A stretch of 64,000 nt of DNA from Thalia democratica (Eukaryota). Below the pieces are notes generated by a model that searched no databases, was not told where the DNA came from, and saw nothing but the letters and a program-made list of their open reading frames with translations. The translations under genes and the position numbers were made by a program. Positions 1 through 3,251 of this stretch are shown here, piece after piece. The number at the start of each line of letters is the position of its first letter. Position 1 is the stretch's first letter. Location of the stretch: positions 15,314,001 to 15,378,000 of the forward strand of contig OZ241829.1 of the NCBI GenBank assembly GCA_965202585.1. The letters run 5' to 3'.

Positions 1-3000
1 TCGACAACTTTGGTCAAACTGGTCATGATGTGAAGCCAAGTTACCATCAGTGTCAAAAATCTCTGAACCAAAAGAGCACTCAAGTTCAACCTCATTGTGG
101 CTACTATCAACAAAACAGCTCTGATTATGTTGTTTCAAACCAACATGCACCAAAGAACTATGCCTGCCAAGACCACGACAAGTTGTTGAAAACCTGTCAG
201 GTTGTTGGTCATCAACAACCGAATTTGTATGATCAAAATGCTCAAAACCAGTACCAATTGCAAGACTACTACGGAGCACAACATCAGAAGATAGGTCAAC
301 ATCAGTATAACTGCTACAATCAGCAATTGAATGATGGTAATTCTGTACAACAGAATTATAATGGTTTGTTTTGATGTTTATAAATAGCGAGTGTACAAAT
401 TATTAAAAAACGATATTTAATCAACATTATAGTAGTAAAAAAGATACACTAACAGATGTTGCTTTTGCGAAACAAGATTTGGAAGCTACAACAGTCAGCA
501 ATTACGATAAAGTAACAGTTTAAAATATATAGTTAATTGTTAATTTTATACTTATTATATCATTAATCAATTTCAGTCAGGTGGTGCTTATTTTTCAGCT
601 GACCAAAAAGAAAGCGCTTGTTGTGACTTTGCATCAAAAAACAATAGAAAACTTGCTTATAGGTGAGATATGTGTTTATCATAATAATACCACAAAAAAT
701 ACTGTTTAAGCTTGATTTGTTATAATTTAATTTTGTTCAGGTCTCGCACTGTTTTCTCAAGTTACCAGGTTGAAGTTTTAGAGCAATATTTCAGGCTACA
801 AAATTACCTTAATGATGAAATTAAAACGAAAATTTGTAAAGAGACTGGGCTCAGTAATGCTGTAGTGTATGTAAGTGAAAACTTAAAGCTAAAAGTTCAA
901 AAATATATCTTTATTTTTTTTTTTAATAAAGTTATATATATTGTTTATTGAACGATAAAAAAGCGCTCAAAAAGTTTGGTTTAAAGACCTGGAGTTCAAA
1001 GGAACTTTTCGGTTATCGAGTCGTACACGACATGCTTATAAAGTCTCTTACGAGTTATTACACATAGTTTTTATCACTTAAATATTTAAATCTTCAGTAA
1101 TAAAACAATCAGTTAAACGAAAATAAAAATGAAAGAAAATAAAACTAAACGAAAATTAACTGAAATTTGTGTTTGATAATGTACTATGAATTTTGTTTAG
1201 TAACATAAGAACTAAACTTTTGTGCTAAAAAGGTAATTTTTATTTTATTTATTAATTTAACTTGAACAGTAAAAATAACTTTACATTTGAATAATTAGAT
1301 AAACTACTTTTTAAAATTTTGAAGAATTTTGAAGAAGTGATTTTTACAATAACTGAATTTATCTTTTAGAAATAAAAATATGAAGATAAGTACTGTGTAA
1401 CTTATGCTCTTAATAAGAAAAAACAATAATAATTCTAACAATAATAATATTAACAACAGCAAATTTCCTTCTATTTTAAAATATAGTTTTATTTTTTTAA
1501 ACTTGTCCAAGTCTAAAACTGTAATATTAGAAAGCAAGAAACATTTGCAAACATAAAAAAAAGATTTTTTCTTTGATTTCCTCAAAAAAAAAGAGGTTTT
1601 TTAACTTAAGTTTGCTTGAAACAGTTATCTTAGCTTACTATTTAAATTATTATAGTTTAAGTAAATATACAACTTTTAGAATTGGTTCAAAAATAGACGA
1701 GCAAAGTTAAAGATAGCTCAAAATGGCTTAAAACCGAAAAAATATTTGAAACGTAAAAAAGGTTTGTTACATTAAGTTGTTTACTTAAGTATGATTGGTT
1801 ATGTGTTAAGTTTTATAAAATTGTTATCATTTTTCAACTTTAATCAAATCGGTTTTAATTTATTTCAACTTTAAAAAGTATCCAAAAAATCAAGTGTTTC
1901 ATAATAAAGCGCACAAAGTAAAATAAAATTAACTATTTTTACAGAAGCTACCACTGTAAGCAACGTGTGCCAAGTAGAATTTGTAAGAGTAAGTTTTTAA
2001 GCTGTATTAAAAGATTATATAGATTAAGTACTTGAGTATATAATTATTGATAAAAATAAATAATCTTAAGTTTAAATTTAACTAGCTCATTTTTATGGTT
2101 TTTTTTTTGGGATTTGTAAAATAAATACTCATAAAAAATAGTATGCTTATATTTAATTAAATTTTAAGTTTAATTTGAGCAAAGTTTTATTACAAGTAGA
2201 AGTTTTTGTTTACAAAACTTTTTAAGTTACTACTTCGAAAGTTTTTGTTGAAGCGTTATATAATCTATACACAAAATTTTTCAATACTTATTAACTAATG
2301 AACTGATTGAAAGTGAACTAATATTAAACATTTTATTCATTCTTAAAGCAGACCGCTATGGACTCGTTGATAAGCGTTGAAAAACAAGCATTTGGTGAAA
2401 ACTCGGCGAAAACAAGAAAGTTAGTTGTTGTAAATTACAATTTGTAATTTGGCATTAACTTTTAAAAATGTCTTACTAATTACATTTGCATACTAGTTTA
2501 GTATTTAAATGGACACAGAAAAAAATATAAGGAAAACATTGAGTTTTGAACTATAGATTAAAACTAAATAGTTGTTTTTTGAAAGTAATTACAATTAAAG
2601 CTTGTTTACATTTCAAACAACAAAATCCATTTGTATCATATACATTAAAGTAACATAACTTTCTTTTCTTAATATTAAACGAACATAATTACAGGAAAAG
2701 GATCACATTGAGCGGTCACCAGACTGACGTGTTACTGAACTTCTACCTGAATTCAACCTGGTACCCTCACAGTGACGAATTTGCTCGACTCATGCAAATC
2801 ACTGGTCTCTCTGTGAAGGAAATAAAGGTGATCAAATTAACTCTTTTGTAACTAATTTTTAGTAAACATTACCTGTAAATATGTTTTTGCAAATATTTAC
2901 AGGTTGTGTAAAATTTTGAAAGTTACAAAAATACTTTGAAAGCATAAAAACTTTTAATACTTGTTTGACTGTTGTTATTTACTTTTGTAAAAACGAAGCA

Positions 3001-3251
3001 GAAAATTTTTTAAAATGTTGAAAGATGCAAAAATATTAATCGAGTTACACTATATTTATGTAAAAGTTTTTAAAAAATGTACATACTCTAAAACAAAACT
3101 AGCTATATTTTACACATTTAACAAAACCATCTATTTTCAGACGTGGTTTCAGAACCGTCGCTGCAAGGACAAAAGTCATGGTTTCAAAATCACCAAGACT
3201 TTAGATAGGCAAAACAGGAGAATGAGAGCTAACCAACAGTACTTTAAGTAA
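1..3251 (+). CDS. Double-homeodomain transcription factor (divergent PRD-class-like), 5' end outside window
   Basis: Phase-consistent GT-AG exons: <1-363, 581-662, 741-870, 1680-1761, 1945-1988, 2352-2419, 2695-2827, 3141-3251(stop). HD1 = RSRTVFSSYQVEVLEQYFRLQNYLNDEIKTKICKETGLSNAVVY|NWFKNRRAKLK; HD2 = KKRITLSGHQTDVLLNFYLNSTWYPHSDEFARLMQITGLSVKEIK|TWFQNRRCKDK. Both homeoboxes are split between codons 46 and 47, the typical PRD-class intron position. The first visible exon is Q/N/Y-rich. The two linker exons are the least certain. Confidence 0.88.
940..1067 (-). mobile_element. tRNA-like SINE family, copy 1 (homeobox intron)
   Basis: Shares GTTTATTGAACGATAAAA...AAGCGCTCAAAAAGTTTGGT...GGAAC(C/T)TTTCGG(C/T)TATCGAGTCGTACAC with copies at 22410, 23896 and 37268. 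The minus strand reads GACTCGATAACCGAAA(A/G)GTTCC, resembling a tRNA anticodon/variable-arm segment, and ends in AATAAACAA. Confidence 0.6.

Follow-up and report, generated by a model that had tools for sequence, protein, structure and literature searches.

Gene structure at the locus

The window analyzed here is a stretch of 64,000 nucleotides (nt) from Thalia democratica (contig OZ241829.1, positions 15,314,001-15,378,000 of the forward strand), which belongs to contig 5 of an 802-Mb assembly with a guanine plus cytosine (GC) content of approximately 27%. At its start lies a gene for a protein with two homeodomains, of which the first (HD1) has lysine and the second (HD2) glutamine at homeodomain position 50 (K50 and Q50, respectively). 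It is probably an intact, transcription-factor-like gene of nine exons, one of a family of 14 paralogs, with a derived K50 in HD1. The gene model was assembled from the three forward frames, with exons spliced together at GT-AG sites, and comprises nine exons on the + strand and a single open frame of 419 codons in the spliced message. The window holds the 3' two-thirds of the gene, and exon 1 lies outside it. All eight introns are bounded by GT and AG, with 16 of 16 splice-site dinucleotides intact. Given the base composition of the region, approximately 9% of random codons would be stops; therefore, an open frame of this length (probability of approximately 5e-18 by chance) is not a chance product.

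HD1 comprises residues 228-287 and HD2 residues 337-397, with 49 residues between them. A sequence-only reading of the same DNA had placed two homeodomains at 741-3251, approximately 48 amino acids (aa) apart in one frame. All four homeobox exons were read directly and match the Pfam Homeodomain family; the spacing and the shared frame hold for the spliced message, while the exons themselves stand in different genomic frames. When the splice chains between HD1 and HD2 were enumerated, direct joining of exon 5 to exon 7 was found to break the frame. The model with two linker exons was kept because both exons recur, in the same phases, in a paralog on contig 7.

The two homeodomains and their class

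Helix 3 reads NWFKNRRAK in HD1, with K50 encoded by AAA at 1689-1691, and TWFQNRRCK in HD2, with Q50 encoded by CAG at 3150-3152, in agreement with the sequence-only reading. HD2 is 61 aa long owing to one residue added in the loop between helix 1 and helix 2; HD1 has no insertion. Each homeobox is split by an intron between codons 46 and 47 (phase 0, GT-AG), as had also been proposed, and by another inside codon 3 (phase 2). The residues that maintain the fold and its contacts (R5, L16, F/Y20, W48, F49, N51, and R53) are all present in both domains. Against the Pfam profile PF00046, for which the gathering cut-off is 22.9 bits, exon 4 alone gives HD1 a score of 36.6 bits (E 4e-9), to which the helix-3 exon adds 15 bits. 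The two exon pieces of HD2, scanned separately, reach 16.9 and 17.3 bits, each short of the cut-off, and the homologous HD2 of P0001, a related protein described below, scores 39.8 bits on the same family.

Profiles of both domains were compared with solved structures. The nearest to HD1 are engrailed, HoxA13, and Dlx3, followed by Pitx2 and ALX4, and the engrailed Q50K structure 2hdd is among its matches; for HD2, the ZFHX3 homeodomain comes first (E 5.8e-6), followed by HESX1, ALX4, Paired, and ZHX1-3/Homez. DUX4 chains are absent from the best 60 structure matches of the HD1 profile and from all 17 matches of the HD2 profile, and neither domain bears a particular likeness to DUX. Pfam detected no zinc fingers in the window exons or in P0001, only homeodomain families. 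The TALE class was considered and rejected: its three-residue insertion between helices 1 and 2 does not occur here (one residue in HD2, none in HD1), and the Homeobox_KN matches are weak. Introns at the 46/47 boundary of the homeobox are typical of the PRD (paired) class. The intron position thus suggests a PRD-like gene, and the HD2 loop is reminiscent of zinc-finger (ZF)-class domains. As judged from sequence and domain content, the gene is a double-homeodomain gene outside the named families, including Dux, Zfhx, and Zhx/Homez, in line with the earlier reading, which did not recognize it as a named family.

A family of fourteen paralogs and its transcripts

The genome was first searched with the two N-terminal homeobox exons, which revealed several further places with HD1-like and HD2-like exons 1-1.4 kb apart in the same order, and then with a profile built from ten aligned HD1 exons. 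The profile recovered 14 loci at 63-87 bits, the window gene at 75 bits, with the next homeobox at 38 bits. At 14 of 14 loci, an HD2-type exon pair lies 1-3.5 kb downstream on the same strand; the loci are dispersed in the genome and have retained their introns. The four homeobox splice positions and their phases are common to the window gene and the 12 intact paralogs, with the exception of C2:81.05M, in which the acceptor at HD2 codon 3 has shifted. The N-terminal HD2 exon of the window gene is 34-55% identical to 12 paralogous exons, and paralog proteins share 40-57% identity; therefore, synonymous sites are saturated. The remaining member, C6:23.47M, has its N-terminal HD2 exon, 3.2 kb from HD1, disrupted by a stop or frameshift and is probably a pseudogene.

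Homeoboxes of the 61-aa HD2 type are far commoner, with 72 matches in the genome. A large cluster of single-homeobox genes with this type of domain occupies C2:13.0-14.5 Mb, some members of which, at C2:14.0-14.1 Mb, have K50 (TWFKNRRSK) together with a Q-rich N-terminus; P0029, a public protein of 489 aa, resembles the genes of this cluster.

Evidence for transcription of the family was found when a profile of the HD2 exons was searched against 1.84 billion proteins and recovered P0001, a protein of 435 aa with a Q/N-rich N-terminus, HD1, a linker, and a 61-aa HD2, both homeodomains passing the Pfam threshold (55.6 and 39.8 bits). Its open reading frame (ORF) runs uninterrupted through a 1354-nt JGI contig from sample 3300018893, which we take to be a marine metatranscriptome. 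On the genome, this contig matches the exons of the paralogs C2:56.84M and C1:92.44M at 71-86% nucleotide identity, and the boundaries between the matching pieces coincide exactly with the predicted splice sites, the two 46/47 junctions included. Because of this piecewise exon match, P0001 is identified, by sequence comparison, as the spliced messenger RNA (mRNA) product of a family member from a related species. Likewise, both homeodomains stand in one ORF in P0135 and P0136, which have 87-89% identity to P0001 and are encoded by JGI contigs of 1460 and 1544 nt, so the two-domain transcript is real for the family. Separate transcripts for HD1 and HD2 had been named as evidence that would refute the earlier reading; the P0001 mRNA has the two domains in one ORF, and the window gene would by extension give a message of the same kind. 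The same search also returned many unnamed proteins (P0003-P0028) of 200-1000 aa with 3-8 weak homeodomain-like stretches, in which the loop reads (N)PYP or YP and helix 3 has odd motifs, for instance, WFSNRRRRDG and WYTNKR.

Both units have the same two introns, in position and in phase, and for this reason the two-domain layout probably goes back to a homeobox exon pair that was duplicated internally. Sequence identity between HD1 and HD2 is low (approximately 28%, both in this gene and family-wide), and the HD1 profile reached a single HD2-like exon in the genome at E <= 1 (E 0.078), none from the 14 family loci; hence, it is the intron positions by themselves that speak for a common origin. 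The comparison places the duplication before the 14-member family, with the two-domain layout ancestral to it. The tandem homeobox duplication proposed earlier for this gene is thus consistent with the shared introns of the two units, but it belongs to the ancestry of the family and is not an event of this gene. As far as the sequences compared here go, the double-homeobox family appears so far only in this genome and in the DNA and RNA of close relatives, and no account of double-homeobox genes in tunicates or salps was found in the literature searched.

Origin of the lysine at position 50

HD1 residue 50 is Q in seven paralogs and in all three transcripts, N in six paralogs, and K in the window gene only; in the double-homeobox family and related single-homeobox families together, Q, N, D, and K occur at this position. 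In a maximum-likelihood tree of both domains, computed with the residue-50 column omitted, the sister of the window gene is C7:13.97M, a paralog with Q50 (support 87/85). Because Q50 is the state of this sister, and all 13 paralogs as well as the three transcripts carry Q50 or N50, the comparison indicates that a single C-to-A change converted Q50 to K50 on a lineage that was evolving fast. The switch of the specificity residue that had been suspected from the window gene is thus borne out by its relatives. HD1 is not of the Otx/Pitx/Gsc type by descent: its closest relatives are the 13 paralogs with Q50 or N50, and Pitx2 is a mid-ranking structure match.

The end branch of the window gene, the second-longest in the family tree, measures 1.23 changes per site versus 0.35 for the sister (approximately 3.5 times), with a family median of 0.13. 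Relative to outgroup paralogs, private changes number 14-22 in the window gene and 6-10 in C7:13.97M. Of the columns strongly conserved in the family, 16 are lost solely in the window gene and 5 solely in its sister (p = 0.027); within HD1, the corresponding numbers are 8 and 1.

Exon anatomy and neighborhood

The exons and related features are listed in Table 1. The first 227 residues of the protein include 36 Q, 24 N, and 17 Y, and similar Q-rich N-termini are found in the paralogs and in P0001. The intron that splits HD1 holds a repeat for which summed contig depth rises to between 1e4 and 4.5e5 over approximately 841-1680, compared with approximately 50-200 in the flanks, and whose copies show many internal deletions and variants. 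Exon 5 is 70% identical to the equivalent exon of the contig 7 paralog, which also has a counterpart of exon 6 with the same phases and the same end (SNV..R/gtaagt). Linkers like exon 7 are present in that paralog and in the P0001 mRNA in the same phase, with a basic K/R run ending two bases into the Lys codon before KRIT. The tail motif of exon 9, G.K..K..DR, is kept in the paralogs.

Table 1. Features of the double-homeobox gene (positions are those of the window; negative or upstream positions precede it).
Feature	Position	Strand	Description
Exon 1	704-477 nt upstream of window	+	Carries ATG; donor read in upstream DNA
Exon 2	-15 to 363 (begins 15 nt before window)	+	Q/N/Y-rich low-complexity N-terminal region; frame open across window start; acceptor read upstream
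Exon 3	581..662	+	Stops two bases into HD1 codon 3, phase 2; canonical AG/GT; frame continues into exon 4
Exon 4	741..870	+	HD1 residues 3-46 (helices 1 and 2); Pfam Homeodomain E 4e-9; GTAAGT donor after codon 46
HD1 46/47 intron	871..1679	+	Contains very high-copy interspersed repeat
Exon 5	1680..1761	+	HD1 residues 47-60 (NWFKNRRAK), then basic KPKKYLKRKK; ends in phase 1; Pfam helix-3 E 0.022
HD1 codon 50	1689..1691	+	AAA = Lys
Exon 6	1945..1988	+	44-nt linker, phase 1 to phase 0, frame restored; strong acceptor, GTAAGT donor
Exon 7	2349..2419	+	Linker; stops two bases into HD2 codon 3 (phase 2); GTTAGT donor; in-frame ATG inside
Exon 8	2695..2827	+	HD2 residues 3-46, one extra loop residue; Pfam Homeodomain E 0.0057, 44 residues on 43 profile positions
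Exon 9	3141..3251	+	HD2 helix 3 TWFQNRRCK, tail G.K..K..DR, stop TAA 3249-3251; Pfam E 0.0042
Candidate polyadenylation signal AATAAA	3475..3480	+	224 nt past stop; motif match only

Upstream of the gene, an uninterrupted Kelch-repeat-like ORF of 324 codons lies 16.8-15.8 kb before the window on the + strand. Two similar ORFs of approximately 105-120 aa, approximately 6 kb apart, are situated on the - strand at approximately 14.2-13.9 kb and 8.2-7.9 kb upstream, each accompanied by a member of a second pair of similar ORFs, an arrangement that looks like a tandemly duplicated unit.

Maintenance and proposed action of the gene

Two divergent haplotypes are present in the DNA contigs, and the sequenced individual is therefore highly heterozygous. 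They differ by approximately 6% in the intron at 2420-2613 and by 1.7% in exon 2. The second haplotype, found in the contigs of one sample, keeps AAA at codon 50, and no variant is listed at 1689-1691 in the contigs of either sequencing run. Among the variants listed, the differences in homeodomain codons are four synonymous (1694, 1709, 3191, and 3215) and no non-synonymous ones. One contig has no differences in 55 bases from the 3' part of exon 7 and 11 substitutions plus a 4-base-pair indel in 194 bases of the downstream intron.

The protein would consist of the Q/N/Y-rich N-terminus, HD1, a basic linker of 49 residues that resembles a nuclear localization signal, and the 61-residue HD2 with its short conserved tail. 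Its transcription, nuclear function, and DNA specificity are proposed by extension from the family and from homeodomains in general. By analogy with these, it would contact DNA through two independent three-helix domains joined by the basic linker, and the N-terminus may serve as an activation or self-association region. The lineage of the window gene would have evolved two to three times faster than that of its sister, with Q50K arising there alone through the single C-to-A change. K50 together with A54 reads the CC of TAATCC, while Q50 reads TAAT followed by T/G and then A/G. With engrailed Q50K, Bicoid, Otx, and Pitx as analogs, a TAATCC-like site may accordingly be preferred by HD1 and a TAAT(T/G)(A/G)-like one by HD2, and the window protein could in that case recognize a bipartite site, unlike its 13 paralogs. 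HD1 also departs from K50 paired-class domains at residue 47, where it has N and they have V, and a preference for TAATCC is therefore not assured; with T47 and C54 in HD2 in addition, the exact sites are uncertain. That the gene is a neofunctionalized paralog whose K50 and Q50 pair reads a bipartite TAATCC/TAATTA-type site open to no sibling is thus a tentative proposal that we hold doubtful. If true, it would represent a natural and recent replay of a switch of the zen-to-bicoid type, in a chordate-lineage family with an independently built DUX-like layout.

Several observations weigh against an intact gene in active use and were considered together with the alternatives. The long branch and the eight family-conserved HD1 positions lost could equally mean relaxed constraint, in which case the window copy would be a redundant paralog with an open frame, silent or dispensable, and K50 one neutral change among many, bringing no new function. 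The second-longest end branch (1.23 versus the median of 0.13) and the 16 conserved columns changed versus 5 in the sister are what such a copy would show; the family sheds copies, as the broken C6:23.47M illustrates, and residue 50 varies in it and in the related single-homeobox families. The sequencing runs listed for the window stretch are DNA only, none of them RNA. Protein searches with the ORFs that bear the HD1 and HD2 exons found no ortholog among proteins of 48-152 aa and 36-114 aa, respectively, a weak negative at that scope; metagenome contigs yielded no relative of the window gene, again a weak negative given the limiting form of the query; and a search for the spliced junction that encodes YNWFKNRRAK, made with a degenerate DNA pattern, had no match, a result of similarly little weight. 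Within these searches, neither a transcript nor an ortholog of the window gene was recovered. The same libraries do hold related-species orthologous exon ORFs of four other paralogs (P0002, P0005, P0006, and P0009), and the orthologous pieces include the sister gene C7:13.97M at 83% nucleotide identity over 1 kb, introns included. Nevertheless, a drifting copy in a genome of 27% GC would have had to keep 419 codons open where approximately 9% of random codons are stops, all 16 splice-site dinucleotides, and every fold-critical residue of both homeodomains. The haplotype differences listed for homeodomain codons are all synonymous beside an adjoining intron that differs by approximately 6%; from the variants listed, this synonymous excess is only suggestive. 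On balance, it is probable that the window copy is a functioning gene, and rather unlikely, on present evidence, that it is a copy drifting under relaxed constraint.

Two further readings concern the unity and the affiliation of the gene. The locus might be divided between two transcription units, the first of which would end after HD1, with a short second gene, for HD2 only, that would start at the in-frame ATG of exon 7. Read-through of the exon 5 donor meets a stop after four further codons, and no complementary DNA (cDNA) exists for the window locus. Nonetheless, the order HD1-linker-HD2 and the exon phases are kept at 14 dispersed loci, P0001, P0135, and P0136 each have both homeodomains in one ORF, and exons 6 and 7 have consensus splice sites and maintain the frame, which makes separate units very improbable. 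It is even harder to assign the gene to a known multi-homeodomain family (DUX, ZFHX, or ZHX/Homez), whether as a diverged ortholog or as a fragment. BLAST does align both domains, spacing included, with adjacent homeodomains of long multi-homeodomain proteins at 24-28% identity, and the top solved structure for HD2 is that of ZFHX3 (E 5.8e-6), with ZHX1-3 and Homez also matched. However, such identity is the general background level among homeodomains, the best matches of HD1 are engrailed, HoxA13, Dlx, and Pitx2 rather than ZFHX, and DUX4 is missing from the best 60 HD1 and all 17 HD2 matches. Furthermore, Pfam found no zinc-finger domain in the window exons or P0001, and the protein has 419 aa versus thousands for the ZFHX-like matches.

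Comparison with known multi-homeodomain and K50 proteins

Two-homeodomain proteins are, to our knowledge, rare. Mammalian DUX, the best-studied case, is specific to its lineage and regulates genome activation in the early embryo. The independent family described here, with 14 intron-bearing genes, would provide a second system for how two-homeodomain factors arise and diversify, and transcripts of one family member are present in environmental RNA. Within this family, the window gene offers the sharpest natural experiment, with a single-nucleotide Q50K in one domain and a Q50 sister for comparison.

In human, multiple homeoboxes occur in the families Dux, Zfhx, and Zhx/Homez, and each of the homeoboxes of DUXA contains an intron (PMC2211742). 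Like the mammalian DUX proteins of the PRD class (DUXA, DUXB, and DUX4), the family described here combines two closely linked homeodomains in one protein and is lineage-restricted and multi-copy; an intron in each homeobox is likewise shared with the intron-bearing DUX members (PMC2211742). It differs from DUX in lacking sequence affinity to DUX4, in its 61-aa HD2, and in its long Q/N/Y-rich N-terminus. Its 14 copies are dispersed and contain introns, unlike retrocopies in tandem arrays, and its origin appears to be independent.

The K50 paired-class proteins (Otx, Pitx, Gsc, and Bicoid) and engrailed Q50K resemble HD1 in the sequence WFKNRRAK with K50 and A54. The K50 of the window gene is by contrast a recent single-codon change in a Q50/N50 family, residue 47 is N and not V/I, and there is no orthology with the paired-class proteins, Pitx2 ranking below engrailed, HoxA13, and Dlx3 for HD1.

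The ZF-class proteins ZFHX3/ATBF1 and ZHX/Homez also have several homeodomains per protein at similar inter-domain spacing, and the helix 1-helix 2 region of HD2 (DFY..N..YP..D/E...L) is most like that of the second homeodomain of ZFHX3 and of the ZHX domains, a resemblance only at modest E-values. In contrast to that class, the window protein lacks zinc fingers, is approximately 5-9 times shorter than the ZFHX-like matches (2121-3746 aa), and has both homeoboxes split at 46/47. Set beside these systems, the gene is new as a lineage-private form of the double-homeobox theme with a derived Q50K, rather than as a new kind of molecule.

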